Shown: positions 12,804 to 63,500 of the stretch, one piece after another | How the letters are laid out: the number at the start of each line of letters is the position of its first letter | How positions within the stretch are numbered: the first letter of the stretch is position 1 | Program-made: the position numbers and the translations under genes | Origin: Caecitellus pseudoparvulus | Lineage: Eukaryota > Protista > Bigyra: Bicosoecida | DNA: 64,000 bases | Reading direction: 5' to 3' | Assembly: GCA_965644315.1 (NCBI GenBank) | Contig: CBFFRQ010000096.1 | Span: forward strand, 124,001 to 188,000 | The notes under the pieces: generated by a model | Database searches by the model: none | Seen by the model: only the letters and a program-made list of their open reading frames with translations | Told to the model about the DNA's origin: nothing

Positions 12804-13091
12804 GCTGCATTCAGTGAGGGAGCAATACCGCCTGGGCAGGGGTCCAGCAAGCTCCAATTCCGCAGTGTGCGCAGCGCACGTGCCGATGCCCCACGTGCCA
12901 CACGTGCGTTTCTTCCAGCTGCGCCACCGATTCCAGTTGTAGCTGCAAAGCGTGTGTGTGGTGAACTTCAGCAGCCAGCCTCCGCACGATGGCACGCAAG
13001 CCGCCACACATGAGGTCTTGCGAGGGAATGTGACAGCCTCCAACTTGTGCCGACGATCGCCGTGGACGAGGGCTGCATTCAACAAGGCGCT

Positions 13092-26600: not shown

Positions 26601-26943
26601 CCATTGCAGCGGAGAGGGCTGCTTCGAAGGATGTGGTGGAGCCGGGCGGTGCCGTGGAAGAAGAGGCACCCACGCCCACCTCCATGGTGCGCGGAGGTGT
26701 GGAGTCATAGGAAATGTGGGAGGCTGTCGGCTCGCCGGGGTGTGGTGGCAGGCCCAGCGCCACGCTGTCCCAGCTGATGTCTCCACTGCTCTGGCTAGCG
26801 CCAGTGACACTGGCAGGGGCTGCACGAGGAGTGCGGGCGCGCACGCGGGGAGTGTCCACATCAGGAGCGTCAGATTGAGGGGATAAAGATCGCATCACTG
26901 CTGTGCGTGCAGCGTGGAGGAAGGGAAAGTCGTACGTCGCCAT
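23635..26943 (-). CDS. 1102-aa low-complexity protein with coiled coil, 14x18-aa repeat and Cep70-like C-terminal segment
   Basis: Single long ORF. C-terminal TRERICRDRALH and LQEMCVEVGAQQVSEALPCLRKMAKASLLYPPLKRYANVVCDVV recall Cep70-family helical motifs (tentative). Confidence 0.6.
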   Translation of the reverse strand: MATYDFPFLHAARTAVMRSLSPQSDAPDVDTPRVRARTPRAAPASVTGASQSSGDISWDSVALGLPPHPGEPTASHISYDSTPPRTMEVGVGASSSTAPPGSTTSFEAALSAAMAPSQPASTHPKQGSHQASTESQSQVSGTEATSSALAASLSHLRAAQSAEAQLRGQIATNDALYRQLQQEHAQLQAAMAAMTSVSGSSVASSAHLAGQGPQTASSVSTPTPPPPPGMSPLRPAPPSDEGTPEHLRGVHSVAEEQSDDASSFSEHSLSPGPDSCSSSSHQHGGHEGGSPDTDGDTPESQHYAPLSFFQDTASQARSGQYAGQELLQGAASQARSGQYAGQELLQGTASQARSGQYAGQELLQGTASQARSGQYAGQELLQGTASQARSGQYAGQELLQGAASQARSGQYAGQELLQGAASQARSGQYAGQELLQDTASQARSGQYAGQELVQGAASQARSGQYAGQELVQGAASQARSGQHAGQELLQGTASQARSGQYAGQELLQGAASQARSGQYAGQELLQGAASQARSGQYAGQELLQGAASQARSGQYAGQELLQGSDATVDVGVGLRSLGGRPATYRTSQHASYPPMHTASHSLGSPVPALRGGPTVRSTRQAHPSGQPGSPGIQYLLKKYGEQQRRTVVHSEQPAREGGPDGEEAEGGVQGGATRAVSPIAAALGPRVDAHAARALSHSAREAAEEAVAAAARSRAAAQAVAMVGAQGHDETVSTQTDSTDRTSALSASPVPEEVGPQAGAGAAGACGSHDAAGDIPSRLVPRPRQAFVPWPHPHYEWYNVRYDGQGRRQRLAACVRPWEAPHHSSAQQESKGGDTAGAGVPAPGHMDVSDAVQGGVVSLASYRDAVRTAEGLYLTMRSAGLQPDVRSSTGGKAPTTRERICRDRALHCKRVRGARPSQRDQRCLASKNTQAVHALRAALQCIEDPLVDVPAPLPMPSKGGDEVGPPLHLGDLLAPSDGGQWRQQVAVAAASNPSPAAALKVNALHGAVEATKNPRELAHALATVLQEMCVEVGAQQVSEALPCLRKMAKASLLYPPLKRYANVVCDVVGAKLVAHDPDTGIPPVGLEESLYLLRDALGGNGH
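25258..26013 (-). repeat. Coding minisatellite, 14 x 54 bp (GAASQARSGQYAGQELLQ)
   Basis: Fourteen near-identical head-to-tail units with no spacers. Variants occur only at a few positions (G/D, A/T, L/V, Y/H). Confidence 0.97.
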
Positions 26944-37500: not shown

Positions 37501-38459
37501 AGGCTGTGCCGCGCTGGCAGGCAGCCATGGAGAAGGTGCAGGGGCGGCTGCTGGTGGCCATTGGGGACACGAGCATCCCCCAGCGCCTGGCGGCAGCGCA
37601 GACGCTGGTGGCGGGGCTGGACCAGAAGCTGCGGGATGCGTACGAGGAGGAGGAGTCTGGGAGGGCCAAGTTCCACTCCGCCCTGAAGGCGTGGAAGAGC
37701 CGGCTGGAGCAGCAGGTGGCTGTGCTGCAGCAGCGCTTCGCAGGGGACTGTGCGGCGCTGGGCGCTGTGGGCTCCATCAAGCTCGTGGACGGCGGCTATG
37801 ACTGCACGCAGTACGGCCTGGAGCTGCAGACGGCGTGGCATGGGCAGGAGGTGGGCAGCAGTGCCGCTGCGCAGCAGTCAGGCGGCGAGAAGAGCGTCAC
37901 CACAATCCTCTTCCTGCTGGCCATCCAGCACACCTCCCCCTGCCCCTTCCGCCTTATTGACGAGATCAACCAGGGCATGGACTCCAAGAACGAGCGGCGA
38001 GTGCTGGAGCTGGTGGCGCGCTCCACAGCCCCCACGGCCCTGGAGTGCGCCAAGCTGGGCCTGCCCTCCACGCCGCCCGGTCCTTCCCGCAAGCGCGTGC
38101 GGCCACAGGCGGCAGCGGCACCGCCCCTGTCGGCACATGAAGCGGCACGGGCCGACCCCGGCCACCAGTACTTCATCTTGACGCCAAAGCTGCTGCCTGA
38201 CCTGGACTTCCCCGACCACGTCCGCATTCACACCATGTTCAACGGTAGCTTCGTCTCGCGCACAGCTGCCTCATGCATTGACTTGGGAGTCATCCTCAGC
38301 AAGCGCCGAGCCAAGCTGGAGGAGGGCGGCGCGCAGCCACCCCCCCTTGTCGTCATGGAGGAGGACAGCGTCCCAGTCGCGGCTGCAAGCCTCGGCTCGG
38401 TGCCGGTTGCAAGCTCGTCCGCCCACGCCGGGCCTGGCGAGGAATCCGATGGTTTCTAG
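34533..38459 (+). CDS. SMC5: Structural maintenance of chromosomes protein 5, 6 exons
   Basis: Introns 34616-34686, 34770-34841, 34976-35048, 36613-36689, 36983-37073. LKNFMTH, GPNGSGKSSVVCAIILGLGG, NNCQVLPQE, QSGGEKSVTTILFLLAIQ..CPFRLIDEINQGMD..NER and QYFILTPKLL. Confidence 0.95.
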
Positions 38460-41414: not shown

Positions 41415-44322
41415 TTATCGGGCGGTGGGAGGAGGCACCACGGTACGTGGCTGCCTGGAGGGGGGCCGCGTCGCAGAGGGCACTGGGGAAGGAGCTGCTG
41501 CGGACAGCTCGACACTGGCGGTGCCGCCGGAGCGGGAGGGCGTGCGGTTGGCACGGCCCTGCTTGCGTGGCGTCTTGGGCTTCTCCTCAGCCATGCGAGC
41601 GTAGCCACGCCAGGACACGGCGTTGACGATGAAGTCCAGGAAGCCGACCGTCTCGCGGCCCTGGCGGTGGGCAGCCACGCGGGCGCAGCAGAATTCAATG
41701 AGGAACAGCAGGAAGGCACCCACGAACAGCATGCCGACAGCGAGGCCGATGGCGTACTCGGTGCGGATGGTGCCCAGGGAGAAGACGGTCTCCTCGCAAG
41801 GGAAGGGGTCGCCGTCACCCTCCGCGTCGTTCTCGTTGGGGCCTGTCACCAGGACGTCCTGGGACGCGTCCAGCTCGGGGGCAGTGCTGTCCACGGCATC
41901 CACGGGCAGCTGGATGACTGCTGCCGCGTCGCCGGAGGGCGTGGAGGGAATGCTGGGCGTGCCGCCTGGTGTGGAGGCGCCGGGGGTGTATGCCTTGGCG
42001 CACATGTGCTCCTGGCTGCTGGGGGAGTCGTCCACGCAGATGACACCGGTCTGGTCGCGGTTGGAGAAGTTGTTGTTGCGGGAGCTGAAGTACGCCCAGC
42101 GGCCCTTGTTGTTCATGGCCACGGGGCCGGCGTCGAAGTAGGGCGTGAAGGCGGCGTTGAGCTTGGCGCAGTTCTGGGGGTGGTTCTCCCGCTCGTTCTT
42201 GTTGTTGATGGCCTCCAGCTGGTCCTGCGTCAGGCAGGCGCGGTTGGAGGCGGCCAGGGTCTCGCGCTGGTTCAGGTACGCCAGGGCCATGGCCGTGTCC
42301 ACGTCCGGCACCAGGGTGTTCCCTGGTCCCACCTTGGTGAACATGGTGGCGGAGCCGTCCACCTTCTCCACGCTCAGGGGCATGTTGCGGTTGTCAGCGG
42401 CCATGGCCACGATGTTGGAGCGGTCAGCACGGGAGTTCTGGTTGCCGGCGCTGGCCTGGTTGGGGTCAGGGGGCCCGCCCTCTGCGTCGTTGCAGCCGCG
42501 GCGGGGGTTGTAGTCAGAGCCAGTCCACTGGAAGTGAACGGTGTCCGTCGTGCGCACGTTGAGGTCGTTGGGCACGTAGTCGTACTCCACGGCGGGGTAC
42601 GTCTGCACGATGTTGCCTCGCTTGCCGCGCACGTTCAAGTTGAAGATGGTGCCGCCGTTGGCAATGGTGGCCCCAGCGGCGCGGTCCCGGGCCAGCTGCT
42701 GCTCAGAGTCGCCAGTCCCAGCGGGGGCCGCCTCACCTGGCATGAGGGGCTTGCGGATCTCGAAGACGTAAGAGCGGTCCTGGAAGGTGCGCCCGTACTG
42801 GTTGGTGTTCAGGGCCAGGGACACGATGTCCTGGTTGCCGGCGTCGTCGGAGTTGATGACGACGTAGGGGTCTTGCTGGATGGGGGAGTTGTCAGAGTTG
42901 TTGCGGTAGTCGATGCCGGGCGACACGGAGGCAGTGCCGACGGGCTTGGAGTACGCGGCGTAGTCGCCCGTGGAGATGTTGTAGCGCACACGCAGGACAC
43001 AGTTCTTGTTGGCATGCTGGGGCACCTGCCACACATACCGGTTGGCGTTGTTGCGGTGGGGGATGCTCTCGTTCACGTTGGCTGGGGCGGCAGCAGAGTA
43101 CACAGTGCCCTCGGCGTTGCCCAGCTGGTTGACACGGGAGTTGGGCAGGGACTGGCAGTCCACATCTTCCAGGCCCAGGCTGCTCAGGTCGGCGTTGGCA
43201 CCCAGGCCGAAGCGGTTCGTGATCCAGTTGTGCCCTGCGGCGGTGCAGGCGGCGGCGTTGTTGTACCACTCGCCACGCTGCTTCAACTGGGCGGGAGTGC
43301 GCTGGCCAGCCGCCACAGGCGCGCCTGCCGTCTCGATGCACTCGCCGACAGAGGAGGAGTTGCTGTTCTGGGACTGCGCCTTGAACCACTGGCACCACTG
43401 CGCCGTCTCAGCAGCGCTGCCATCACCATAGTCGTGCAGGACAGCGACGTCGATCCAGGGGTTGGGGGCCCAGTAGGGGTAGTAGTCGCGCTCCTCAGGG
43501 CACTCCAGGCCGTTGCGGTTGCCGTTGGGGTTCTGGCGCGTGCCACGGGCGTCGCGGCGGCGGACGTTCTGGTCGGCCGTGAACAGGCCCTTGTTGCGCT
43601 CACGCTGGGTGCAGGCGGCGTAGTAGTCGCTGTTCTCGTGCATGCCGAAGCGGCGGGTCTCCACGGTGTTGGCGATGCCTTGCGTGCGGTCGGTGGGGAT
43701 GGTGTCGGTGGCGGCGTCGTTCTGGTCACGGGGTGTGCCGTCACGGGGGGCGCCGACGTGGTACAGGTCTGGGCGGGGGTCCGCTGCCGAGGAGGCCTTG
43801 GCTCCGCCACGGAACGCGCCAGCGGGGTCCAGCGTGTCTTCGCAGGCGTACTGGATGACCATGTTGCACTTTTCCTTGGGGTTGTCACCACAGCCGTGCT
43901 GGGACGTCCACTCAATGGGGATCATGGAGCCAGCGTAGTAGTACCTGAGGCAGTGCAAGTCAAGCGCGAGGGTGGCTTTCGTGGTTTCGTTGCACTGCGA
44001 GCGGCCGACACGCACAGCTTGTTGGTCTGCACCTCAGGGCCGCCCACGGCACGAGGGCAGGCATAGCCACCCTTGGCGTTGTTCTGGCTGTCGAACAGAC
44101 GGTTCCCGTTGTTGCGGTTGACGTTGCGCTGTGAAGGCGGGCGAAGGCAAGGTGTGCTTCTGCTTCAAGGGCAGTGCACTTGGCCACAACGCCACAGGCG
44201 CCACGCACCTCGCAGTTGCGGTCATTTCCTCCACGGGGGTTGTGCATGTACACATCAGCTGCCACCAGCTGTGCGCTGATGGCGGCTGCGGCAAGCAGCA
44301 CCCGAGTGAGGGCTCGGGCCAT
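41415..44322 (-). CDS. DD3-3: DD3-3 family type I membrane protein, 3 exons
   Basis: Signal peptide, then DVYMHNPRGGN..NRLFDSQNNAKGGY, EWTSQHGCG, GLECPEERDYYPYW, RVRYNISTGDY, LNVRGKRGNIVQTYPAVEYD, SRNNNFSNR and a C-terminal TM. Introns 44129-44208 and 43945-44015. Confidence 0.92.
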
Positions 44323-45936: not shown

Positions 45937-47304
45937 CTATGGGGCACGCCCAGGCGCGTGCAGGTGGGGCAGCCACTGCGCCGCCATGTACTCTGCCGAC
46001 TGCATCTCGATGAGGCGGGACACGGTGCGGTCGAATGCAAACACCTCGTCGGCGCCGCCCCAGGCGTCCTCATCCCCCACCACGTGCCGGGAGGCGGGGC
46101 CAGTGGGTGTCAGGCCTTCTGCGTGCCCGCCTGGCTGGAAGATGTGCTGTGGCGGCAGCGGCGCGCAGGCGAACAGCTTCACCTTGTGCTCGTACAGGGT
46201 GTCCACGAGGGTGATGAAGCGGCGCACCTCCCCCCGCTCCTGCATGGACAGCTTGGGCACGTCCGCAACGTACACCACCCGGAAGTTCTGGGCGATGACG
46301 ATGAAGTCCGCTGCGCCCAGGGGCTGAGCGCACAGCTCGTGGAAGGTGAACCACGCCACGCCGGCGTCCAGCGCTGCACGGCGCACCGTCACAGCACGCC
46401 CCTGCGTGCTGAGTGTGGTGGCGCGGGGGCTCTCGCCCTTGGAGACGGTGTTGAAGGACGCCTGCAGGGCAGGCGTGCCCCCCGTCGTGATCCACGCCTG
46501 CCCCAGCTGTGTCCCCAGCAGGCGGTAGTCCGTCGGGGAGGACAGGTGCAGGACAGCGCAGTGGGCCTTGATGCTGTCGATAGTGGGCAGGAAGAGGTGC
46601 CGGTTCAGGCCGTCGCGGTACAGGTCGTCGGGGGGGCGGTTGGAGGTGGCCACCATGACGAGGCCTCCCCGGAACATGGCCCCGAACAGCCGCGCCATGA
46701 TCATGGCGTCCCCCACATCCGTCACCTGGAACTCGTCGAAGGCCAGCACATACGCCTCCCGCAGGAGGTCTGAGGCGATGGTGAGCAGGGGGTCCACCTG
46801 GCCGGCGCCGCCTGCGCCGTCCTGGCGCATGCGGTGCAGGCGCGCGTGCACGTCCAGCATGAAGGCGTTGAAGTGTACCCGGCGCTTGCGGCGGATGGGC
46901 AGGCTGTCCACGAACATGTCCATGAGCCAGGTCTTGCCGGAGCCGACGCCCCCCCAGATGTACCGCCCCTGGGGTACTGCTACTGGCGCAGGGGCAGGGG
47001 CCGCCTCGCGCCGGGCGCCCAGGCCCCCGAACGAGAACAGGGACGCGAGGGCAGTAGGGGGTGGCGGTGTCGGGCCAGCCGAGAGCGCTGGCGGGCCTCC
47101 CCTGCGGTCCAGGGAAACGATGGAGTCGTGCAGCACGTCCAGCTGTTTCATGACCGCCAACTGTCCTGGATCATGGTCGGCTTGTTTGGACTGCACGAGG
47201 GCCTTGTACTTCGCCAGGGGCGTCGTAGCAAAGGGCCGCCTGCAGCTGGCCAAGTTCCGCACGAGGCAGCCGAAGTGCCCCGCCACTGCGCCTCGCAAGG
47301 CCAT
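45937..47304 (-). CDS. AFG1: AFG1/LACE1 (ZapE family) mitochondrial AAA ATPase
   Basis: YIWGGVGSGKTWLMDMF, RVHFNAFMLDVH, FDEFQVTDVGDAMI, ATSNRPPDDLY, RRFITLVDTLYE and FAFDRTVSRLIEMQS. Confidence 0.95.
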   Translation of the reverse strand: MALRGAVAGHFGCLVRNLASCRRPFATTPLAKYKALVQSKQADHDPGQLAVMKQLDVLHDSIVSLDRRGGPPALSAGPTPPPPTALASLFSFGGLGARREAAPAPAPVAVPQGRYIWGGVGSGKTWLMDMFVDSLPIRRKRRVHFNAFMLDVHARLHRMRQDGAGGAGQVDPLLTIASDLLREAYVLAFDEFQVTDVGDAMIMARLFGAMFRGGLVMVATSNRPPDDLYRDGLNRHLFLPTIDSIKAHCAVLHLSSPTDYRLLGTQLGQAWITTGGTPALQASFNTVSKGESPRATTLSTQGRAVTVRRAALDAGVAWFTFHELCAQPLGAADFIVIAQNFRVVYVADVPKLSMQERGEVRRFITLVDTLYEHKVKLFACAPLPPQHIFQPGGHAEGLTPTGPASRHVVGDEDAWGGADEVFAFDRTVSRLIEMQSAEYMAAQWLPHLHAPGRAP

Positions 47305-47576
47305 GCTTGTGCGAATGCTGCAGGTTACAGGAAGAGAATGTTTCGTTCGCAGCGAGAATCGATGCGCGGATTTGACGGTGGGCGCTGTGTTGCGCCTGCA
47401 AGGCTCAGCTCGAGTGCTGGAGCCTTGTTTGTCCCAAGTCCCGTCCCACGTACACAATCCAGGCACCTCGCAAACGCTTTGAAGTGCGAGGCCGAGCTTG
47501 AAAGGCCCGCCAAGACTGCACTGCTCGCGCACTAAGCCTGTCTCTGGCCCGCCCTGGTGCACCCGTGCAAGGCAGC

Positions 47577-50500
47577 ATGGCCGCTTTGGCGGGTTCAGCA
47601 CCGGCTCTGCCGCAGGAGATCTCCGCCAGCACTGTGCGTGTGCAGCGCCCGGCTTGCCCGCTCGCAGGGCGCAGACACCCCTCTTCCCCACCCTCCACAC
47701 ACAGTCCGATGCCTGGCTGCCCAAGTTCTGCTCCTGGGCGCCCTTGCTGCCGGCAGACATCCAGGGCGACGGCAACTCTGCGGTAATTGAGAGCTGCAGC
47801 CAGAGCGCACGTGCGCTGCTGCGCATGCCCTATGCGGCCTTCATCTCTGCGATGATGCACAACGGGCAGGTTCGCTTGTGGTTCGATGCCCTGCTGCAGG
47901 GCCTGCCGCGGAAGGTGGACAAGCGTCGGGCACGCCTGATGGGGCCGGCGGCGGCCCTCGCGAATGTGCGTGCTGCCTTCCGCTGCTGACGTCGCGGTCG
48001 CAGGGGCGCCCACGTGTGGCACAGTCGACCCCCTCCCCTCGCACAGGTGGATGAGCTGTGCCATTTGACTTGCTTGCTGTGCCTTCGCCTGCTCGGCGGC
48101 GAGCGTGGGCAGCTGTCGCCGGAGAGTGCAGGCAGCCTCGTCAGTGCGCTGTACGACACCTGGACGCTGCACGTACCGCGGTTGCTGGACATCGCAGGGC
48201 TGCTGGCACCCACCATGCCACGTGTGGCAGGGGCGTGGTTCAGCTCCCTCATCGCCCTGCAGCCGGCGTACCTGAGCGATGTGCGGGACACGTTCCCCAC
48301 CATCACCACCACCGTGCAGGAAGCGTCACGCAAAGCGAGGGCGCTCCTGCAGCAACACGTGCCGGACCAGGGATCAGCTGGTGGCGTTTCCACCGTGAAC
48401 TTGAACCTGCAAGCGCTCGCAGGTGTTGTCCTGGATGCTGCCGGGCGCAAGGTGTGCCTGGACCTCTTGCGTTTCCTCGCTGACATTGCTGTTGCGTTGC
48501 AGGCCCTGCTGGCGGCACACCCAGACTTCAGCTTCGCGCTGCTGCCTGACGGAGCGCCCTTGGACAGCGCAGCAGTGGCACCAGGCACTTTGTTGTATGC
48601 GGTGCTGCATGCGTACAACCATGTCGTGCCTGCGCTGCTGGTGGCGGTCACTGACGTTGCGGTGTTTGTGCCGCCCAGCGCTGGTGTGGATGGCTTCGAC
48701 AGCCGGCACGTTGGCGCAACCATGGCGGCGCGGCGCGGGGGCGGCGGCGACGAGGCAGAAGCGTGGATTGCCTCGCAAACGGCGTCGCACCACTTTTTGA
48801 AGCTGTGGCACTGCGTTCTGTGCCACACCGCTCTGGTGCCGCTGGGCGCCTCTCCGCAGCACTTCACACGCCAGGAGCCCGCCGACTCCCTCCTGCCCCT
48901 CCTCGCCAAGCACTGCAACACTGCTTTCTCGGACTCCTTGCCAGTCGTGAAGGGTGGCGGGGTGCTGGCGGTGCCAGACATGGAGGGCGCCAGCGAGTGG
49001 ACAGCACAGCTGGCAGCTGCCCCCCCCCCGCCGCCCCGCTCACACTTGGTGGGGCGCCTGACAGCATCCCAGGTGCACGGGCGCCGAGCCAGTGCACAGG
49101 CCGTGTCGGAAGGCCTCGCTAGCTTCATTGGCGCGGCACTGGAGGGTGGCTCCCTGCACGCTGTCCTGTCCTCAGGCGGCGGCGTGGCGCGGTCGCGCGG
49201 CGGCGGCGGCGACACGCTGCACATTGTCGGGCGGGAAGCCAGCCTCATGTCCGAGTACACCCAAGCCTACCGTCTGCGGGACACGTTGGCCATTTTCGCC
49301 GCTGCAGCGTCCACCTCCGGCGCCAGCGAAAGCGCCGGCAAGCTGCCGCCCGGCGTCGTGTACACCGCCGCACAAGGCCCAGCGAGCGCCCAGGGGCCCG
49401 GCGACGGCAGCAGCTCCACAGCACCTGCAGCCCGGGTGTCTCTGCGGTGCACCCTGGACCGCGCGCGGCTGCAGTACCTCATGGACGCTCTGGCAGCCGC
49501 TGCCGCGTCCCAGCCTCTGGCGGTATCGGCGTCAGCGCCCCCATCCCCTGCCCTGCACCGGGCACCCTCCCTCACCACGCAGACCTCCCATGTCCCCACT
49601 GCCGTGGAGAGCATCCAGGAGGTGCTGCCACACATTTCTGTCCCGTACGCCACCAAGGCCATCGCCCACGCGGGGGGGGATGCCGACGCCGCTCTGCTGG
49701 CACTGTTGGACGGCAGCATGCCGCCTGAGGAGGACTTGGGCGAGGTTGCCCCGCCCACAGGTGGCACAGGCGCAGGGGGTGCCACACCCTCCATGTACCC
49801 AGCACCGCAGGGTGGTGGTGGCGGTGGTGGTGGTGGACGCCACGTGTCATCTGCTCTGCTGGACGGGGATGAGGACCCTGTGGCGGCGCTGCCGTCTGGG
49901 GCGGCTCGCGGGCTGAAGCAGGTGGGCAAGATCGGCACGCGCGACGTGGTGGGCGGCAAGGGCTTCGACGCCACTGCCTCGGTCATGGCCAGTCTGCCCG
50001 CGCCCACTCACGACGAGGCCTGGACGCAGCGCATGAGCAGCCTCATCGCCCTGCAGGCGTGGGATGAGTACGACGATGAGTACGACGACACGTTCGACGC
50101 TCAGGGGCGGTTCGACGCGGGCGGGGACGGGCAGCAGGTGGAGCTGATGGAGGCTGTGCCTGCAGGCACCCGCAGCGCCGAGATGAAGGCTGCGCGTGAG
50201 CGCCGTGCCGCGGCGGGTTTTGCTGAAGCAAGCCCCGCCGCTGCCGCTGGCTCGCAAGGGGGTGGTGCCGCGGGCGGCCGAGGAGGGGGACACCGGCGGG
50301 GAGCCCGTGGTGGGGGGGGGGCTGGTCGTGCGGGGCGAGGTGGTGCAGCAAAGGGGGAGCCTCCAGCTGGCGGCGGCAGGGGCCGGGGGGCAGCCACGGC
50401 CAAGGGGGGTGGGGGCAAGGGGCGTGGCAAGCCCAGCGGCGGCCGGGGCCGCGGCAAGAGCGGCCTTGCGGCAGCCGGCATGACGTCACAGGAGGCGGCG

Positions 50501-50584
50501 CGGAAGGGCGCCAACAAGGCCACCACTGGAAACCATGGGCGTAAGGACCGCGCCCGCAAGAAGATGGGCTCCGTGCCGGGGTAA
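47577..50584 (+). CDS. ASCC2: Activating signal cointegrator 1 complex subunit 2 (CUE domain), 3 exons
   Basis: Introns 47634-47704 and 47966-48046. LLRMPYAAF..FDALL..PR, LYDTWTLHVPRLLDI, CUE AVESIQEVLPH..LLALLDG, EYDDEYDDTFD, RGG-rich region and KGANKATTGNHGRKDRARKK. Confidence 0.85.
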
Positions 50585-50596
50585 GCCTCAACTGCA

Positions 50597-50604
50597 AATG
50601 CATT
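50597..50604. terminator. Palindromic AATGCATT in the 22-bp convergent ASCC2/Tctex-1 gap
   Basis: Exact copy of the motif. Function is inferred. Confidence 0.35.
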
Positions 50605-50606
50605 CG

Positions 50607-51100
50607 TCAGACACTCAGCGCGTACACCGTGGCGATGCCAAACATGCTGCTGTTCTCGAAGCGCACTGTGACTGAGCCGTCCAGGGTGGGGTCCCAGAAG
50701 CACTGGCTGTTGCTGCTGAAGCCTGCACCCTTCCGTTGCAGGATGGAGCAAGTCGCTGCCGAGGGGGGCGGACCGCACGAGCGTGGACGAGCCAGTGCTG
50801 GTGGTCGCAGGCTGGCGGCACGCACCGACGAACTTGAAGGAGAGGTCCAGCTGGGAAAGGTGGGCCATGATGTTCTGGCAGATCTCTGTCGTCCACTCGT
50901 GCATGCTCTCGCTGCTGAACTCCTTGTCTGACAGCGTGGCAGTCATTTCCTGTGGCGGCAGGCTGGCGATTTCCGCAACACGCCGTGGCTGTGCTGGAGC
51001 CTCAGACACGCACCGCGTCCGCGATCTTGCTGACCCTGTCCTTGACATCCTTAAACGCAATGATGCTTGTGATGCTGCTGCCGCCGCCAGCTTCAGCCAT
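50607..51100 (-). CDS. Tctex-1 family dynein light chain (119 aa), 3 exons
   Basis: Introns 50950-51013 and 50756-50825. WTTEIC..LSQLDLSFKFVATCSILQRKGAGF....CFWDPTLDGSVTVRFEN.SM..IATVYAL. Confidence 0.92.
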
Positions 51101-51468
51101 CGTGCCGCTTGCTTGCAATGAAAAAACTCAGGCAGGGCAGGCGGTTGATTCTGATGCAGGAGGGTGCGCCCTCTCTGACTGGCGAGGTGTTTACTGCAGT
51201 GCAGGGCCGTGCCCGGCTCCACGGGATGGACAGCGTCAGTGGACTGCACGTACTTGGAAGCGACATTTGCGCCCTGGCCTTTCGTGTGGCGAATGGGATT
51301 TGCTGCGTGAGCGCAGGCACGTGCTTCCAACTTCGAGTTCAGATGAACGGGGCGAGTCCATGCGCAGAGGTGAGTGCATTTCGTTCCAATACGTTCATAT
51401 GCTTTTGTAATGGGGAGGTGAACCCCAATGCTCTGTGCTTTGGGCGGCGTCCTGCCGGCAGGACGAGG

Positions 51469-51977
51469 TCAGGAAGACGGCGAGCCCAGCGGCACTCCGT
51501 GTGCTCGGAAGAACTCCTTCGTCACTGACACACGCTTGAACTTGGGGCGTGTAAGTTCACACTGATCCACCCCCTTTCCCCACTCTTGTGCCGTCGTCAC
51601 CATGCTCCCCCTGTCAATGCTTCTGTCGGGGCTGTGCAGTGTTTTGATGTTGTAAGGGTCTTCGCGCTCGTCGCTCAGCCGGTCAAACTGAGTGGTACAC
51701 GCAAAGGTGCGGGTCCCACCAGGAAGCTTGTAGGTGAGTGCTGCAGGTTGCGCCGCCTTCTCAGTTGCAGCAGCAGCTGCGGTGTGCGGAGGGACGCCTC
51801 GGCGTGGTGGCGTGCTTCCGTCTCGTTGAGACGGCGCCGACTTCTGCGGGCTGCCTGCGCAATTGCCGAAAAGGCCGGTGCACTTGCTCGTGCAGCAATC
51901 CGATTGTGTCGCTACATACCCGCGCTTCGCGGCGTGCAGCTTCGCAAACTGCCTGGGCTGGACTGCCTTGCGCTCAT
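51469..51977 (-). CDS. Small protein, possibly CFAP90-like ciliary protein, 2 exons
   Basis: Intron 51855-51919. C-terminal FDRL..KTLH..DR..TTAQEWG..PKFKRVSVTKEFFRAHGV recalls the CFAP90/C5orf49 pattern (tentative). Confidence 0.5.
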
Positions 51978-52517
51978 GGCAGTGACTCCCGTGCAGGACC
52001 GTGGTGTGCTGGGCACGAGGGGCAGCACGAGCGCACCAACAGGTCAAACGCAAGCACAGAGCTCCACATTGTTAACAGATTGCCCCTTTAATGTACCGAG
52101 AGCGAGACTGCGCCAAGCTGCAGAGGAAGCTCGCCGTCGATGCATCATGATGCACAAGGGGCCACCAGCACCAGCTTCCTGGCCCAGCACTGCAAGACTG
52201 AGTGGTCTCAGCCCCACCATGGCCACTGCACTTGTGCAGGACGCTGTGACCGAGGGCAAAACGCGCTGTATGAGCGGCAGAGCATGCCATGGCGTCGTCG
52301 CCTTACGCAAGATGCGGCGACGACGCCGCCTCAGCCACACCCCCCTTTTATCCCATCCTGCGCCACTCCAAGCCGCACATGCTGCGCTGGGAAGGCGCCT
52401 ACATTGCACCGCCCAACTGGACTGTGCGCCTTGCCTCATCGCCTGCAGCCTCCTGCTCTGCCCGGCGCAGCACTTTGAAGGCGGCAGCCTCAGCTCACCC
52501 CCAGCCCAGCCCCGACC

Positions 52518-53940
52518 ATGCGCCTGTTGTCAGCAGCGTTGCTGCTGTGCACTGCAGCTGCTGGAGCAGGTGAGTCCATGCTTTGGCAGCACTGGAGTGT
52601 GCGAGCACTGCACGGCACGCCTCCCGCTTCTGCTCGCAGCTGCTGCCGGGATGTTGAAGGATTGTGTGGAGCAGTATCACCCTCAAGCCGCCTCGGTCTT
52701 GGAGGCCGCCCTCGTCCCGGGCTTGTGCGTACTCCGTGCTTCCCCTGCAGCACACACTGCCCGCATACATATACATGATCCCCATTGCAGGGCTTCGGGG
52801 CCTCGCCTCTCTGGGGCGCTGTTTGGCAGCAGCAAAGATGTGCGCCAGCGTTACGTGCTCGTTTCGGGTGCAGCCGCCCACCGCCTCGAGTTCCTCGCCC
52901 TCCCTCACAGGGCCTCATGCAAGTGGCTCAGGCAGTGGGGTCAAACTTCGGATACGTCACTGTTCTCCCCTTGCAGCACCTGGCGAAGCAGCCCAAGCCT
53001 TCAGCAGGCGTCCTGCAGGCCATCGCTGATGCTCTCGTGAGTTTTCCTGCACCACCCACGAGCGGCCACCCATGCGCGGCACGCAGCTTCGCGCTCCACG
53101 CCTCAGGCTGCCGAGCCCAGCACCCTCTTCGTCGTCAAGGGCGTGGAGACCCTGACTACTGCTGACCAGCTGGGGTGCCTGGACCCCCTCCATGCGATGA
53201 TGGAGCAAGGGCACGTGACCAGCGCCGCCGGTGTCTCCCTGGACGCCACCGCCGCCGGCGTGCTGCTGGCAGTGGAGGCCCCCGACCTCGCTGGGCAGGT
53301 GCCTGGAGCTGCCAAGTCCTGGCTGGAGGCGCGGCTGGTGGCGGCGGCCGGCTCCTCCGCCGTGCTGACACCCTCCTCCTTCGTTGGCCGCCTGCGCACG
53401 AGCGTGGTGCTAGGGTCCCTGTCGCCCCAGAGCCAGGTGGCCCTGGCCAAGGCGGCACTCACGGGCCCCTGCAGCCACAAGGCCATGGTGCAGGCGACAG
53501 CTGCCCACGCAGGTGGGGAGGGGGCGGACGCCTCCGTGACCCACCAGGGCACCGGCGGACTGCTGGCGTGGTTGGCGGATGAGGAGGTGCAGGGCACGGT
53601 GCTGCCCCGGGTGTTGGCGGTGTGCACGGTGCTGTTCGTCATGTCCTTCGCCCTGCTGAACGGCACCATGCCCCCCAACGGCTCCCTGCACGAGCGCCAG
53701 AGCGCCTACCGTGCTCTGGACGAGGTGGGCGCCAAGCTGTCCCCGGCGCAAGGCGGCGTGGACGTGGATGTGGACGGCACCGGCGCCTGCTGGCCTGAGG
53801 GGCAGGCGCCCGCCCGCCCCGGCCTGGACGCTGACACTGCGCCTGGCACGCGCCTGGGCGAGGAGGGTGACGCCTCCCCACGCTCCGGTGGCGCCCGCCG
53901 CCGCCGCCGCTCCATCGGCAGCAAGACGGCCCAGGAGTAA
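52518..53940 (+). CDS. 381-aa type I membrane protein with lumenal torsin/LAP1-like degenerate AAA+ domain, 5 exons
   Basis: Exons 52518-52569, 52640-52724, 52791-52839, 52911-53036, 53107-53940 (introns 66-71 nt, phases consistent). Signal peptide, degenerate Walker A and B, retained FVGRL, one TM and an Arg-rich tail. Confidence 0.7.
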
Positions 53941-53961
53941 ACATGCATTGGGCGATGCAAT

Positions 53962-54656
53962 TCACGTCTCAGTGATGCTTGGCTGGGTGGGCGCCTGGCC
54001 CGGCCGCCCGATGATCTCCACCAGGAAGTCAAAGTACGGCGTGTGCGACAGTGCCAGCTGCACGTCGTACTTCGACAGCGTCTTGCGCTTGGCCAGTTCT
54101 CGGGAGCTGTGCTGCCAGGACCTGTGGGCGGAAGGGGCAGCGGCGCAGTGCCTGCGTGCCGCGGCGGGCCTGTGCCGCAGCGGCAACGCACCGCATGGTG
54201 AGGTCCGCCACAAACATCTCTACCGCCTTGGCCAGCAGCACCGGCGCCTCGGCGCTGATCATGCGCACGTCCTCATCGGCCTTCATGATGCGCTTGATGC
54301 GGGCCAGGGGCAGGTCGTTGTGTGTCTTGTACTCTGCGCAGGCGGCGCGGCGACAGGTGAGCTGCCGTCGGGCGGCCTTCCGCACCAGGCGCTGCCTCAC
54401 GTTGCTCCGTCATGTCTGCGGGCAGGCGCTGCACTTGGTACTTCATGTACCGGAACAGCAGTGGCAGGGCGCTCTGGGCGTCAAAAGGGTCCTCTGTTGC
54501 TGGGCAGCCGCCCACTGGGTCGCTGGTGGTGTAGGCTGGGAAGGACTCTGGCCAGCCGTGTTGCTGTGCGAGCTGGGCATCAGTCATGGACGCGACAGCG
54601 GCGGCAGCTGACACTGGCATGCCTTCTGCCGAAGCAGGTGCGCCTGGGTTTGACAT
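53962..54656 (-). CDS. NFYC: Nuclear transcription factor Y subunit C (HAP5), 3 exons
   Basis: Introns 54334-54400 and 54122-54191. [56 protein letters not shown]. Confidence 0.95.
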
Positions 54657-54994
54657 GTTTACACAAGGGGGGTGGATGCCCGCCAGCTCTTCACGTGAGA
54701 GGTCGGTGTTGGGGTGGGGAAGGAAGTGAACCGTGCGGGTAATTGGGCAGGGTGAAACGTCTGAGAAACGCGGAGAGGGCGCAGCAGTCCAGCCTGCACC
54801 CTGCTCCAAGGCAGTCGCGACAGCGCCCGACCTTAGTAGAAGTCAGCGCTCTGCATAAAATCCCCCCCACCCACTCTCCTCCTTCCCTGTCAACCTGACG
54901 CGCAGACAGGCACACCTTGCTGTGCGGGCCCTGGCAAAGCGCATGCTGCCCAGCAACCACTTCGTGGCACCCTTCTCGACACGGCGCGGGCACG

Positions 54995-57900
54995 ATGACG
55001 GCGGTCGAAGACTTCGCGAAGCGCAAGCTATCCGATGAGATCTTCATGTTCACCAAGCGGGTGGACGAGCCCCGAGAAGTGGAGGGCTACGTGGGAGTGG
55101 TGCAGACAACCTTGACGTGAGCCTCGTCGCCTTGCACCACGCCAAAGCCTGTGCACGCACGCTCGCCCGCTCCGCACCGTTGGCGATGACAGGTATGAGG
55201 TGGAGGTCCGCGCTTTCCGCGAGTGCGAGTTCACGCTGCGGTGGGAAGGCAGCGCCAACATGGCGCCGGAAGACGGCTCAGAGGCGACGGAGGTGTGTGT
55301 CGCCAGCGCTGCGCCCAGTGGCTGGTCGTCAGGGCCCGCCCACAGCACAGCACACCCCCTCCCGCCCCGCCTGCGACGCTGTACAGGCCAAGGTAGTCAT
55401 TCAGCCCTACGAACGCCGGCGTCTAGTGGTGCTGCAGCAGCAGGACTTGTTGGCGGGTTGGTCGCTGTCCATCGGCAGCAGCTGGCTGGAGCGGCAGCCT
55501 TCCGTGGAGCGCTGCAACGCAGCGGTGGCCGAGACGGCCAAGGCCATCGAGTCGGAGCTGCGCACGGCCAAGACGCTGGACTTTGGCGCAGATGCGGCCA
55601 CCATCGACCACCTGAACGCCGTGTGCGAGGAGCACGGCGTGAAGTTCGTGGACCTGGAGTTCCCACCAGTGGAGGCGTCCCTGTTTTCTGCCGCGTCCAA
55701 GCACGCCCCCAAGCCAGGAGCCCGCAAGATCACCTGGCGGCGGGCGACGGACTTCCTGGACCCCGACAAGCTGGACGTCTTCGTGCAGGGCGTGGAGCCG
55801 TCCGACATCTCCCAGGGCGCCCTGGGCGACTGCTGGTTGCTCTGCTCCATCGCCGCCTGCACGGAGTTCCCCTGGCTCATCACACGCATGTTCCAAGTGC
55901 ACGGGGACGACGCGGAGCCGCAGAGTGCCAACCCGTACGGCGTGTACAAGGTGCGCCTGTGCAAGAACGGGCAGTGGCAGTACGTTCGCCTGGATGACTA
56001 CTTCCCCTGCTACCCCGGCTCAGGGCCGGTGTACGCCAAGACCCACGAGCAGCAGGAGCTGTGGGTGCCCTTGGTGGAAAAGGCCATGGCGAAGCTGTGC
56101 GGCACCTACGATGCCCTGCGAGGGGGGCTGCCGTTCGAAGCCCTCATTGACTTGACGGGGTCCCCCGCCGAGAAGTACTCCTTTGCAGACGAAGCCGTGC
56201 AAGAAAGCATCAAGGACGGCTCCTTTTTCGAGCGCCTGAAGGAGTGGGACACGCGCGAGTACCTCATGACGGCCAGCACGCCAGGGGAGGACAAGTGGAG
56301 CGAGGATGGTGGCGGTGGGCCCACGTCTGGGCCAGGCCTCGTGCCGGGCCACGCCTACTCCCTCATCGCCGTCAAGGAGCTCAGCACAGGGGACAAGCTG
56401 GTGCAGCTGCGCAACCCGTGGGGCAGCTTCGAGTGGCACGGCAAGTGGAGTGACCGAGACCCAGCCTGGACTGCGGACGATGGCGCGTTGCTGGCTGAGG
56501 TGGGCAGCAGCCTGGACGAGGACGACGGCCTGTTCTGGATGGCCTTCGACGACGTCATGCACTACTTCACCGCCGTGAATGTCTGCTACATCCAGCCAGG
56601 CATGGGGCTGCCCTCGCAGTACAACACCGACGGTGAGGGCAACCCCACTGCGGGGCACTGGATCGACCAGCGGCGCAAGGGCACCTTCCGCCTGCGGGGC
56701 ACGGCGTCCAGGGAGGATGAGAGCGACACCCCCGTGGGCGCTGGCAATGACGTCATCAACAACTCCATGTACATCCTGCACGTGCCGGAGTACGAAGGCT
56801 GCGAGGACGGCGTCAAGAACCGCTGCTGGGTCAGCCTGCACCAGGAGGACGAGCGTGTGGAGACTGCCAAGCCGTACCTGGACATGGGTGTGACGGTGCT
56901 GCGCATCGACGACGACGAGTGGTACGCTGACACCGACGCCATTGACTACAAGGACATGGCGGCAGCGGCGCGCGTGGAGCCCCCCGCCATGACTCTGGTG
57001 GGGTCCACTGGCGTCGCGGTGGACCGGCAGCAGCAGCTGCAGGTGAACTTGGAGCCGGGGCGGTACTTGATCGTGCCGTTCACCACCGGGTGCAAGTTCA
57101 AGATGGGCGACAGCCAAAGCAAGTTGATCATCGAGGAGTGCGTGCCGGCACGTGTGGCGCCGTTGGCTGGCAGTGCAGCACCCCCCCTTCGCTTCCCTTT
57201 ACAGAGCTGTGTCAGCCACAGGCAGTGGCAGCGCGCAGGAGTTGGTGCAGAACCACCCGGAAGAGGCTGTGGAGCGTGGTATCGTGACGACCCTGCTGTC
57301 ACAGGCGCCTCAGCAGTGGACTGAAGACAGCGACTGGTACTACGACCAAGATGGCACAACCTAGTGCGTGCTCGGCTGAGCGCAGAGCGACGTGCCACCC
57401 TGTAACGCACCTCCCCTCACCCCCCTCGCAGTGTGGAGCGCGATGTCTGGTTCGTGCCCCGCGCCAAGCACGCCTTCAAGGAGATCTTCCACCGCCTGGA
57501 CGAGGACATGGATGGCGTGCTGAACGAGGCAGAGTTCAATCGGTACTGCGAGATGGTGACGGGGGAGGGCCTGGAGCCAGACACGTGGGCCTTCCTCCTG
57601 AAAGCCCTGGACTGCACGCCTGAGGGGCTGACACCGGATGGCTTCCTGCAGTACTACTGGTACCTCTTGCAGGCCAACGGCGGCGACGAGGAGAAGCTGT
57701 GGGAGTACCTGGAGTTCATGGGGTATGACCGCATGCTGCACCTGAACCGGGCGCGGGCCTTTGTCATGTCCGTCCACTCCAGCTTCGATGTGAGCCTGAC
57801 CCAGCTGCCGCACTGCGCGGACGTGTATGAGGAGGCGCTGGAGCGCCCCGTGAAGGAGCTGGGGGAGGCGCGCACCATGGGGGGTGACGGGGACGTCATC

Positions 57901-58143
57901 GTGTACACGCACAAGTCGGGGTACTGGGGCGTCACGCTGGCGGTGGAGAACAACAAGGACGTGCCCCTGAGCGTCAAAGTGGACTGCTCCAGCTCGGACA
58001 ACATCGTGTCCAGCGCAGGGGAACTGGACTCCACCATGGTGGTGCCCGCTGGCGAGACCAAGATCGTGCACCACCTCATGCCACAGAAGCAGGACCGCTG
58101 GTCCTGGGGGTACAGCATGCAGTGGCAGGAGGCGCACGAGTGA
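54995..58143 (+). CDS. Calpain (CysPc) with domain III, EF-hand and flanking DUF1935-like beta domains, 5 exons
   Basis: Introns 55117-55192, 55293-55386, 57138-57204, 57364-57431. Catalytic QGALGDCWLL, GHAYS and RNPWG; EF-hand DEDMDGVLNEAEF. Confidence 0.92.
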
Positions 58144-58269
58144 GCCGTAGGGCGCGACAATGTACATTCTTATTTCCCCCGCCATCGGCCACTTACTTTC
58201 TGTTCCTGACCAGCACAAGCGGCATCCAGTCACCCATCCTCGCTGCCCTGCATCTGCCCATCGCTTGCC

Positions 58270-59488
58270 ATGGCTCGTGCCTCTGAACGGGAGCCGTTGG
58301 ACTTGGGCGAGGGCGCCAAGGCTGCCATCCGCGCCTATGTGACGCAGGCACCCACAACCCATGTGGCAGAAGGCACTGTGCAAGGTGAGTTCGCCCTGCT
58401 CGGCGCGGGAGTGCTTCCCGCACGACACGGATGCTCCGTGCGGAAAATGCAGTAACGGTGACACACTCTAACCTGAAGGACCACCGCGTCCTGGAGCTGC
58501 GAGTGGACCAGTCTGAGACGGTGCAGGAAGTCAAGGAACGCCTGTACACGTACAATGGCACGGCAGTGTCGTACATGGCGCTGACCCTCATGGACGGCGA
58601 CCGAGTGGTGTGTGCCCGCACGAAACGCCAAGCCCAGCGGAGCAGCACGCCCGCACGTGCCCTGCCCGCCCCTCGCCGCAGGTGGCGAACCTCACAAACG
58701 ACCATGCGACCTTGGGCACGTACGGTGTCGCTGATGGCATGACCCTGCACGTGACAGACTTGGACCCCCACTCGTTGTCGAAAAACGGCGGGCTGGAGGA
58801 CGTTTCCCAGGTGGAGAAGTACCGGATGTCGGAGGAGGACTACGAGAAGCGCGAGGGCACCCTGCGCGCGTGGAAGAAGAAGCTGCTGGCAACGGACCCC
58901 GAGCGCGCCTACGAGCTGTTCCCTTCCCTGCGCCCCAAGGAGCTGCCCGAGGGCGTGGCGCCGGTGACGGAGGCTGCTTCCGTGGAGGGCATCGCAGTCG
59001 GCAGCCGGTGCGAGTGCTCCCCCGGCGCCCGGCGCGGCGCTGTGGCGTACGTTGGCAAGGTCAAGGAGCTGGGCGTGGGGTACTGGGTGGGCGTCAAGTT
59101 CGACGAGCCTGTCGGGCGCTCCGACGGCAGTGTGCTGGGCAAGGTGTACTTCGAGGCCGGCAAGGGCTACGGCGGCTTCCTGCGTGGCTACAACGTGGCT
59201 GTGGGGGAGTACCCCGCCCTGGAACTGGACCTGGGCGACGTCATGGGCGCGGAGGAGTCCAAGGCTGAGCCCCCAGCGCCGGCGTCCGCCGCTGGTGCAG
59301 CTGGCGCGGCAGCAACAGCAGCACCTAGTGAGGCGTCCGCCGCCGCGGCAGCCGGCGGAGAGGGCACCGCCCCTGCCACAGATGCGCCTGTGAAGGTGCA
59401 TGCGGGGTCTCGCACGGCTGGCCTGCGGGTGGTCAGGCGAGGTGTGGCGGACAGTGACGACGAGGACAGCGACGACGACGAGCTGTGA
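58270..59488 (+). CDS. TBCB: Tubulin-folding cofactor B (Ubl + CAP-Gly), 3 exons
   Basis: Introns 58385-58452 and 58608-58681. VTHSNL..VKERLY..G, EDVSQVEKYRMSEEDYEKREGT and CAP-Gly GYWVGVKFDEPVGRSDGSV.GK.YF. Confidence 0.95.
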
Positions 59489-59524
59489 GGCGCCGCGCAG
59501 GGCAGTCTGCGGTGCATTGCCCGG

Positions 59525-60100
59525 CTACAGCGCCTTGGTGTGGCGTCCAGAGGCGACCAGCTTGCCGTCGCTGTTGCGCGTGATGTCCACCTGGGTGAAC
59601 CCCAGCTTCTTGCCGGTCTTGAGCACGACGCCCACCACGGTGACCGTGTCACCCGCCTTGGCTGCGGAGGCGTAGGAGCAATTCAACTCCACTGTCACGC
59701 CAGCCTTGGTGGGGTCCACCGTCAGCAGGGCCAGCGTGCCAACGATGTCCACGAGGGTGGCCTGCGCCCCGCCATGCAGCGTGCCGTACGCGTTCTGCAC
59801 CATCTCCGTCACGGGCATCTCGCACTTGACCATGCCCTCCCCGACTTGCACCACCTTCAAATCCGCCATGTTGCGGTCGAAGCGGCTGCCAGTGTTGGCC
59901 AGATACCCAAGCAAGGCGTTTGCGCCGTGCTTCTTCGCCACGTCAATGAAAGATTCCCCCACTCGGTCCGCCTTGGACGTCACCGTCTCTGCCACGGTGC
60001 TCGCAGTCGCGGCGGCTGCCGTGCTGGTGCCAGCACCTGGGGCCTTGCTGCCTGCCGCAGCCCCTGCAACGTGTGCGATACGACGTGCACAGCACCACAT
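59525..60100 (-). CDS. ACOT13: Acyl-CoA thioesterase 13 (PaaI/hotdog fold)
   Basis: NAYGTLHGGAQATLVD, GVTVELNCSY and GKKLGF..V..LVASGRHTK. Ala/Thr-rich N-terminal extension. Confidence 0.9.
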   Translation of the reverse strand: MWCCARRIAHVAGAAAGSKAPGAGTSTAAAATASTVAETVTSKADRVGESFIDVAKKHGANALLGYLANTGSRFDRNMADLKVVQVGEGMVKCEMPVTEMVQNAYGTLHGGAQATLVDIVGTLALLTVDPTKAGVTVELNCSYASAAKAGDTVTVVGVVLKTGKKLGFTQVDITRNSDGKLVASGRHTKAL

Positions 60101-60558: not shown

Positions 60559-63500
60559 ATGGCTCAGCACGATGCGGCCGGCGGCCCAGGCCTGGACGAC
60601 GAGGTGACCCTGGCTGAAACCCTGCGTGCAGCAGTGGAGCTGGACGACGCTGCGACGTTCCAGGAGCTGCTGGCTCGCGTGGACCGGGAGGTGCCTCCCG
60701 CTGACAGGCTGCTGGACTTGGGCCTGGCCTTTGCAGAGGCCCTGCGCATGGGCAAGGAGCCGTTCGTGCACCGCTTCGTGGACAGGGTGCCGGACGTGAA
60801 CGCGCTGATCCATGAGGGGTGCACGCCTCTCGTGTACGCTGCGGGGGGCCCGCCAGTGTCCTCCACCACCTCTGTCGTGCGGGCTTTGGTGGACCGAGGT
60901 GCCGACGTCAATCTCTTGGCGCCTGGCCCGCGCACGACGCCCCTCATGAAGGCATGTGGCGTTGGGAACGTGGAAGTTGCCGAGCTGCTGGTATCTCGGG
61001 GGGGCAGTGTGAGTGTCGCTGGCTGAGGCAGCATACTGACCCTCGGTGGGGGCGGCTCGAGCTGTATTTCCGCAGCCTCTGCGCCTGCACGCCCCCTCAC
61101 GCGCTGGGCGCGCCCCGCTCGCCGCAGGTGAACGCTGACAACGGTGACGGCTGGAGGGCGATCCTTAGCGCCTGTGACGCCGCCTCGCCAGAGTGTGTGC
61201 GCCTGCTCATCAAGCACGGCGCAGAGGTGAACGTCATCTCGAAGCTGAATGATGGCTGGACACCCCTCATGAAAGCGTGCCGCAAGGGCGACGTGGAGAG
61301 CGCCAAGGAGCTCATCAAAGCGGGGGCAGACATCAAAACATGCCCCAAGAACGGATGGGGCGCGTTACTGCAGGTGAGTGGGCCTGCCGCCCGCTGCTGT
61401 GGCCGTGTTCGCTGCCTGGCCTGTGGCCCTGGCGTTGCTGCCTGCGCCTGCTCGCCTGCACTGGCACCCCCCCCCCTCTCCCTGCCCTGCACAGGCATGC
61501 TTCAGCGAGAGCATCGACTGCGTGAAGCTGCTCATCGCCCACGGCGGGGACGTGAATGCGTGGACTGACCCTGACGCTGGCATTTCGCCGCTGATGGAGG
61601 TGGCGGCGCGAGGCAACGTGGAGCTGGCGCGGGTGCTGGTGGAGGCGGCCGCCGACGTGAACGCGCGCAACAGCAAGAACGGCTGGGGCGCAGTGCTGGA
61701 GGTGTGTGCCAAGAACAAGGTGGAGTGCCTGCAGCTGCTGCTGGAGCACGACGCAGACCCCAACGTGTGGACGAACCCCCGCACGGGCGTAACGCCGCTG
61801 ATCGAGGCTTGCTCTCGGGGGCACGTCGAGTGCGCAGAGCTGCTGATCCAGTTCCACGCCAACGTCGACGCGCGCAACAGTGAGAATGGCTGGTCGGCGT
61901 GCATGGAGGCGTGCGCCAAGGGGCAGGTGCGGGCGGTGGAGCTGCTCATCAAGTACGGCGCAGATGTGAACAGCGTCACGAAGCAGCCCAATGGGGACTC
62001 CCCCCTCATGACGGCCTGCGGCAAGGGGCACGCCGACGTCGTGAAGGTGTTGCTGGCAGCGCACGCGGACGCCAACAACGGCTCCTCAGACGGCTGGCGC
62101 CCCGTCATCTCAGCCTGCGACAACGGCAACGTGCGCTGCCTGCAGCTGCTGCTGGATGCGGGGGCTGACCTGAACTTCTTCACGAACCAGGAGACAGGCT
62201 TCACGCCCCTCATGAAGGCGTGCTCCAAGGGCAGTGCGGAGTGCGTGCAGGCACTCATCGCCTCGGGCGCCAGCGTGGACGCGGCGAACTTGAAGACGGG
62301 CTGGCGGGCCATGATGAACACGGTGAAGGAGGAGGGGCGGGAGGAGTGCCTGCAGCAGCTGGTGGCGGCGTCAGCAGAGGTGAACTTCACGACGGAGAAC
62401 GCCGACGCGTGGTGCCCCCTGGCCAAAGCCGCCAAGGAGGGGCTGCGGGACGCCGTGCGCATCCTGCTGTCCGCTGGCGCAGACGCCAACCTGACGCACA
62501 AGACGTCAGGCCTGACGGTGCTGATGGAGGCGGCGTCTGCGGGGCACGTGGACGTCGTGCAGGAGTTCATGGCCTTCCGTTCCCGCAACGGCATCGACCT
62601 GGACGGCACCTGCCGCAAGACGGGCAAGACCAGCATGGCCTACGCCGCCGAGCGTGGGCACACGGGCGTCGTGCTGTCCTTGCTCAACGCGGGGGCGGAT
62701 CCGGACATTGGCGCCAAGCGGGGCGTCTGCCCCATGCAGCTGGCAGCCGTGAAGGGGCATGTGGATGTGGTGCAGGAGCTGCTGAGCCGGGGCGTGTCAG
62801 CGCGCCAGGCCATGGACATGCGTGGGTACACGACGCGAGTGCCCACACACGTGCAGACGTGCCTGACCTCTCGAGTGGAAGCGGAGTGTGGCGCGGAGGC
62901 GGACGCCGCCGCCGCCGCCCTCCTGGCTGAGCTGGAGGAGGAGGAGGCGGCCGAGAGCGCCAAGAAGCAGAAGGCGGCCCGCAAGCGCGCCAAGCGCAAG
63001 GAGAAGCGCGAGGCAGAGAAGCACGCTGCTGCCGTGCAGGCGCAGAAGCAGGCCGCCGCCAAGGCGCAGAAGCAGGCCGCTGCTGCAGCTGTCAAGGCGC
63101 GGGCTGCCGCGGCCAAGGCGGCCAAGGCACCGCCGGCCCACACCGCCCAGCCTGCGCCCCAGAAAGCCAAGCCCGCACCGGCACCTGCCCCTGCGCCCTC
63201 TTCCCGGTCCTCTGCAGGCCAAGGCTCGGCGCGCAGTGGGGCGTCGTCCTCCCGCCCCTCGGGAGGGGGTGCTGCCCGGACACGCCAAGCCCCTGCTGCT
63301 GCGCGCACCGACCGCACAACGCCTGGGGCCCAAGCGCAACACGCGACCGCCGCAGCAAGCAGCAGCGGCGGCAGCAGGGGCAGTGGTGCCTCGCGCCAGC
63401 GCAGCTCGGCAGGTGCTGCTGCCACCTCCAGGGGAGGGCCTAGCAGTGCTGGTGGCAGCCGCGGCGCGAGCCGGTCCTCTGGGGGCGCCTCAGGCTCCAG

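Follow-up and report, generated by a model that had tools for sequence, protein, structure and literature searches.

The gene described here is located at positions 52518-53940 of the forward strand of a 64,000-nucleotide stretch of DNA (hereafter the window) from Caecitellus pseudoparvulus (assembly GCA_965644315.1, contig CBFFRQ010000096.1, positions 124,001 to 188,000). The window has the appearance of a compact eukaryotic genome, with a GC content of about 65% and short introns. The gene of interest is preceded by a Tctex-1 dynein light chain gene, and downstream of it come genes for an NF-YC-like histone-fold protein, a calpain bearing EF-hands, tubulin cofactor B and a thioesterase. The calpain (55117-58143, +) has domain III, and an adjacent EF-hand ORF is probably part of the same gene. 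Gene order across 48014-60100 is kept at the related loci L007, L011 and L099, where the gene, the calpain and tubulin cofactor B recur, with the thioesterase found in three species; it is kept despite a GC content of about 56% in L007 compared to 65% here. Elsewhere in the window, a 943-codon ORF (10254-13085, -) gave a weak match, below the curated cut-off, to the AP2 DNA-binding domain, a family best known in plants and apicomplexans. Three long ORFs of 800-1100 codons (17836-20859, 23635-26943 and 41415-44066) had no Pfam match, and an internal repeat of about 240 bases with 67% identity was seen in 61203-62027, inside an unannotated ORF.

The gene comprises five exons (52518-52569, 52640-52724, 52791-52839, 52911-53036 and 53107-53940, all +), each of which is stop-free and which together sum to 1146 nt, corresponding to 381 codons followed by TAA. 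The four introns, of 66-71 nt, are all of the GT...AG type with phases 1, 2, 0 and 0. All loci found for the gene represent unspliced DNA, and the five-exon splice model of the original prediction is borne out by the ORF and length arithmetic, by the four intron positions and phases, which three syntenic orthologues (L007/L008, L011 and L099) share, by the variants among alleles and by an exon 4/5 junction identical to that of the independently deposited model CAE7853778.1. The peptides quoted in that prediction were likewise all present in the sequence. Among six near-identical alleles, the exonic variants were 22 synonymous and 4 replacement, and variant density was about 2.7 times higher in introns than in exons, with the GT/AG sites untouched. 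Since the introns are conserved and the variants mainly synonymous, an artefact or a pseudogene could be ruled out; this is a genuine gene on which selection acts.

Near-identical DNA (97-99%) was found in environmental assemblies and in the Symbiodinium sp. KB8 assembly, there on small contigs. Two KB8 contigs (L006 and L103, GCA_905221625.1) are 97% identical, and their proteins have been deposited under a dinoflagellate name; as judged by their gene density, the KB8 contigs would represent a second organism of that culture, probably a co-cultured flagellate. Mavirus-like genes are also present in the KB8 assembly (PMC10120064), a hint that the flagellate may be Cafeteria-like.

With regard to more distant relatives, a full search of representatives yielded one further cluster pair, a word search with a profile yielded a third species, and a look-up of neighbouring genes yielded the fourth. 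Each orthologue has the calpain and tubulin cofactor B as neighbours in an unchanged gene order, and the orthologues match exons 2-5 exon by exon better than shuffled sequences do, with 39-62% identity in exon 5. Three word searches and one full search of representatives gave no relatives beyond these four species, which is weak evidence of absence because the word search at first missed even a 57% identical orthologue; the model was moreover searched exon by exon, which lowers sensitivity. A tblastn search against plasmids gave a single chance match, scans of metagenome and viral contigs gave one already known locus, and candidate P0006 from the representative searches was dropped as a repeat artefact. 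About a quarter of the columns are invariant among the four species, so that a single invariant Arg is by itself weak evidence. Invariant columns are packed most densely in two patches, at the Walker B position and in the segment around the invariant Arg, and conservation is also spread across the linker, the membrane flanks and the tail. What emerges is a well-founded gene family that had gone unannotated, found so far in four related species.

Exon 1 (52518-52569) encodes a signal-peptide-like segment of 17 codons, ending at the phase-1 intron, in which a basic-hydrophobic-small pattern was recognised by inspection in the four species. Exon 2 (52640-52724) encodes an N-terminal helical segment with a conserved P-x-A-A motif, whose own match to ClpB was non-significant, and contains the invariant Cys26 (52663-52665). 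Exon 3 (52791-52839) presumably holds strand 1 and the Walker A position, assigned by position only, and exon 4 (52911-53036), which is Cys-free in every species and had a weak, non-significant match to ClpB, presumably holds helix 1, strand 2 and helix 2. Exon 5 (53107-53940) encodes the second half of the putative lumenal domain, a linker, the membrane helix, the tail and the stop. It starts with the Walker B position (53125-53148), where four hydrophobic residues are joined to an invariant Lys-Gly-x-Glu replacing Asp-Glu, in a register inferred from the distance to the hairpin and lying outside the hhalign alignment. Helix 3, the pre-sensor-1 beta-hairpin and strand 4 (53188-53274) align to E. 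coli ClpB 690-718. In the profile alignments, a segment resembling the second region of homology (53368-53424) follows, and its invariant Arg199 (53389-53391) aligns with ClpA R643, ClpX R307 and ClpB R756, the latter two of which are known arginine fingers. In Thermus ClpB the arginine finger is given as R747 (PMC4358337). The small helical lid domain is absent after an invariant Cys-Ser-His (53470-53478), which includes Cys226.

A single transmembrane helix is predicted at 53599-53655, its hydropathy being 2.1-2.5 in the four species compared to 1.2-1.5 for the next best segment. The tail beyond it (53662-53937), predicted to be cytosolic or nucleoplasmic, is 92-113 aa long, with an Arg run (53896-53910) conserved in four species and a PKRK motif in three of the four. 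The conserved motifs of the tail, comprising a Cys/Gly-Asp-Val-Asp stretch with Trp after the membrane helix in the four species, PKRK and the Arg run, match no family; they may bind a nuclear or cytosolic partner. The tail pI spans 5.8-9.6 across species and therefore does not allow assignment to either the LAP1-like pattern, which is basic and nuclear, or the acidic LULL1-like pattern (PMC4999309). The signal peptide, the single C-terminal membrane helix and the Arg-rich tail were all proposed originally, and a signal-peptide-like start, one hydrophobic helix per orthologue and an Arg-rich tail recur in the four species; this combination makes a type I topology likely, while glycosylation sites were uninformative as a topology test. 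Cys26 and Cys226 are the only invariant cysteines of the lumenal part and are likely to form a disulfide. Two further details of the original prediction fared less well: the Lys of its 'SSKD' motif varies among orthologues, and its 'GPC' Cys, although conserved, is not in a LAP1-like position, as it follows the Arg by 27-30 residues and precedes the end of the membrane helix by 64-71 residues.

To what extent the lumenal part resembles an AAA+ domain was addressed with family libraries, fold models and profile comparisons. When exon 5, segments of it and the orthologous sequences were scanned against Pfam, NCBIfam and PHROGs, no family was matched (one PHROGs match was at E 0.06); with exon 5 from the four species, as with exons 2 and 4, Pfam returned nothing even at E ≤ 10. 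Sequences in the PDB were matched neither by a single sequence nor by profiles of two, three or four sequences. Two AlphaFold models of the half domain encoded by exon 5 were of low confidence (pLDDT 39 and 46), and three Foldseek searches with half-domain models gave no significant match, the ClpC1, ClpB and MCM matches being discounted as they had E-values of 2-5 only. Both models nevertheless display helix, hairpin and strand in the order expected after the Walker B motif of Clp-clade domains. These fold tests were handicapped because what exon 5 covers of the presumed domain is its second half alone, with two strands of the sheet missing.

The profile comparisons pointed weakly, though repeatedly, towards the Clp clade. 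The exon-5 profile favoured ClpA-D2, ClpX and ClpB-D2 over 40 other proteins, with pairwise E-values of 0.005-0.03, and when compared to 110 windows of 45 E. coli proteins it placed AAA+ proteins at four of the five top ranks (chance 0.006, the windows being non-independent). ClpA-D2, ClpX, RarA and ClpB-D2 were at or near the top of this ranking and aligned in the expected register. High ranks also went to FtsK and ClpB-D1, which aligned in a different register. The ClpX family profile reached E 0.0054 with none of 40 shuffles as good, and the ClpB-D2 profile aligned over 87 columns (ClpB 691-777), with shuffles as good in 0/60, 3/160 and 0/40 cases. In this alignment the hairpin, strand 4 and the arginine-finger segment match in order and beat 98-100% of the shuffles, the pairwise E-values being just 0.005-0.03. 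It should be noted that the hhalign probabilities were just 2-7%, and that the Clp family was picked for comparison after the sequence had been seen. The NtrC and RavA family profiles fitted exon 5 no better than shuffles, and with the ClpB-D2 HMM exon 5 was unranked among six-frame decoys. Profile comparison of exons 2-4 with ClpB gave no signal, so that the Walker A position is set by order alone. Of the AAA fold originally proposed, the weak Clp-clade profile signal thus speaks for it, whereas the library searches and the AlphaFold and Foldseek analyses of the exon-5 half do not. We consider Clp-clade ancestry of exon 5, to which these alignments point weakly, to be quite probable, while the AAA+ reading of the lumenal part as a whole is weakly supported.

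No G-K-[T/S] occurs in exon 3 of the four species, and Lys-Gly takes the place of Asp-Glu at the Walker B position, as assigned by register, in all four, in agreement with the predicted loss of the Walker residues. The retained arginine finger was also upheld, in that an invariant Arg lies in the Clp register and the profile evidence, albeit weak, is repeated. The lumenal domain is probably a dead Clp-type domain.

The reading that we tentatively prefer, and that we hold to have slightly less than an even chance of being correct, is that this dead Clp-clade domain gives its Arg to a lumenal torsin-like ATPase, and that it probably arose independently of LAP1. The product would sit in the membrane of the ER or nuclear envelope with type I topology, and a cleaved signal peptide would place a domain of about 205 residues in the lumen. 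This domain would be a Clp/HCLR-clade AAA+ fold reduced to its large subdomain, lid-less and closed by the Cys26-Cys226 disulfide. It would neither bind nor hydrolyse ATP, no turnover being expected since the P-loop lysine is missing, Lys-Gly stands at Walker B and there is no lid. A soluble torsin-like ATPase in the lumen would receive Arg199 at its active site, and the membrane protein would both tether and switch on this partner. The basic tail might set the location, by ER retention or by placement in the inner nuclear membrane. As to origin, the simplest course would be that a protist torsin-like ATPase with a signal peptide was duplicated and that one copy, losing the Walker motifs, acquired a membrane anchor at its C-terminus, independently of LAP1/LULL1 in animals; a single step would then account for both the signal peptide and the type I topology. 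An activator role is plausible because the Arg segment is kept as a top-conserved patch, following the logic of LAP1/LULL1 (PMC4358337, PMC4999309), and signal-peptide torsins with intact sites, reported from kinetoplastids (PMC10903960), make a lumenal partner plausible.

The active torsin partner that was to be expected from the original prediction did not turn up: no lumenal torsin-like ATPase was found in the 64-kb window or in the short related contigs, and two DNA patterns for the torsin P-loop gave off-frame chance matches only. Other P-loop proteins in the window are an ATAD2-like AAA protein with a bromodomain (5349-10238, +), an AFG1-like ATPase (45937-47826, -) and an SMC-like protein (about 34600-38459, +), none of which resembles a lumenal partner. 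An unlikely though still serious alternative is that the dead Clp-clade AAA+ protein has no partner and serves as a scaffold or receptor in the lumen or at the cell surface, the Arg being needed for folding or self-association. Such a protein would show an equally weak Clp-clade signal and no partner, and conservation across the linker, the membrane flanks and the tail besides the Arg segment is in keeping with it. However, the Arg segment is among the two densest invariant patches, the pattern of losses fits that of known activators (PMC4358337), and the partner was sought in just about 64 kb of genome plus short related contigs.

We regard it as rather improbable that the lumenal domain is no AAA+ domain at all and that the motifs arose by chance in an Ala/Gly-rich, lineage-specific membrane protein. 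The blank library and fold searches, the unmatched exons 2-4 and pairwise E-values of no better than 0.005-0.09 would be expected on this assumption, but the hairpin, strand 4 and Arg segment agree in both order and spacing over the 87 columns, several independent AAA+ proteins are top-ranked, and the predicted helix-hairpin-strand order fits. The poor fold model does not discriminate, being expected under either reading since the folded piece is without the two central strands.

That the protein is a true, very diverged LAP1/LULL1 orthologue with its anchor moved to the other end appears improbable. The same functional losses, a basic extralumenal domain and a C-terminal Cys would favour such a relationship (PMC4358337), but orthologues were seen in the four related species only and the predicted topology is opposite: LAP1/LULL1 are type II proteins with the helix just before the lumenal domain, whereas a signal-like start and a helix after the domain are predicted here in four species. 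In addition, a full Clp-like hairpin is predicted here, whereas LAP1 is not known to have one. The LAP1/LULL1 disulfide links a helix 1 Cys to the C-terminal Cys (PMC4358337), in contrast to Cys26 near the N-terminus and a Cys-free helix 1 here, and the Arg-to-Cys spacing is 19 in LAP1 and LULL1 (PMC4358337, PMC4999309) compared to 27-30. The LAP1-like cysteine pattern of the original prediction is therefore not retained. The Pfam LAP1C and Torsin models gave no match when tested exon by exon, at reduced sensitivity; likeness to torsins and LAP1 was judged from descriptions and these models rather than by direct sequence alignment. Judged by profile, topology and disulfide position, the protein is not a member of the LAP1/LULL1 family. 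Finally, it is very improbable that some nucleotide binding is kept, or that the protein is an unusual ATPase acting through the non-canonical invariant K115, E118, D130 and H133 of exon 5, for although the FtsK and ClpB-D1 register sets an invariant Asp at the Walker B position, this Asp lies within the best-predicted helix away from a strand end, the P-loop Gly-Lys-Thr is missing from exon 3 in every species, and the lid and sensor 2 are absent.

The torsin and activator pair has been treated as an animal feature, and torsin function is still open (PMC4358337, PMC7175109). It is conceivable, if somewhat doubtful, that the protein represents the first torsin-type activator outside animals, independent of and opposite in orientation to LAP1/LULL1, and that the split between ATPase and activator evolved at least twice; the literature as covered, which was incomplete, yielded neither a protist activator nor one with type I topology. 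If a protist activator of reversed topology is indeed at hand, arginine-finger complementation in the ER lumen would be either older than assumed or have evolved twice, the essentials (a dead AAA+ domain that is tethered to the membrane and carries the Arg) could be told apart from the incidentals (type II orientation and lamin binding), and the existence of overlooked activators of kinetoplastid torsins would be indicated. Should the protein be no more than a pseudo-ATPase confined to this lineage, it would count as an unannotated orphan of modest interest.

Compared to known systems, the protein resembles torsins, including the kinetoplastid torsins and ERIKA from outside animals, in its predicted signal peptide and its putative lumenal Clp-derived domain (PMC10903960). 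The kinetoplastid torsins contradict older claims limiting torsins to animals, and the 'undescribed' protist ER torsin system of the original prediction was accordingly an overstatement (PMC10903960). Torsins keep Walker A/B, the sensor motifs and the lid, all of which are absent here, and animal torsins are without the arginine finger, whereas the Arg is kept here (PMC4358337, PMC7175109); the C-terminal membrane helix and tail are also unlike torsins. Lacking intact Walker A, Walker B, sensors and lid, the protein is by its sequence not a torsin. The ClpA and ClpB D2 domains and ClpX (HCLR clade) are the best matches, at the hairpin, strand 4, the arginine-finger segment, strand 5 and the next helix; these are cytosolic active ring ATPases whose pore loops, sensors and lid are unrecognisable here. 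LAP1 (TOR1AIP1) and LULL1 (TOR1AIP2) are animal proteins, in contrast to the protist host of the present one, and are single-pass with a lumenal AAA+-like domain from which Walker A/B and the lid are gone, as is also the case for the putative fold here. In place of the Walker B acid they carry a basic residue, as does the present protein with its Lys, and they keep the arginine finger and two conserved cysteines (PMC4358337, PMC4999309), which correspond here to the invariant Arg and to Cys26 and Cys226. The protein may share the mode of action of LAP1/LULL1.
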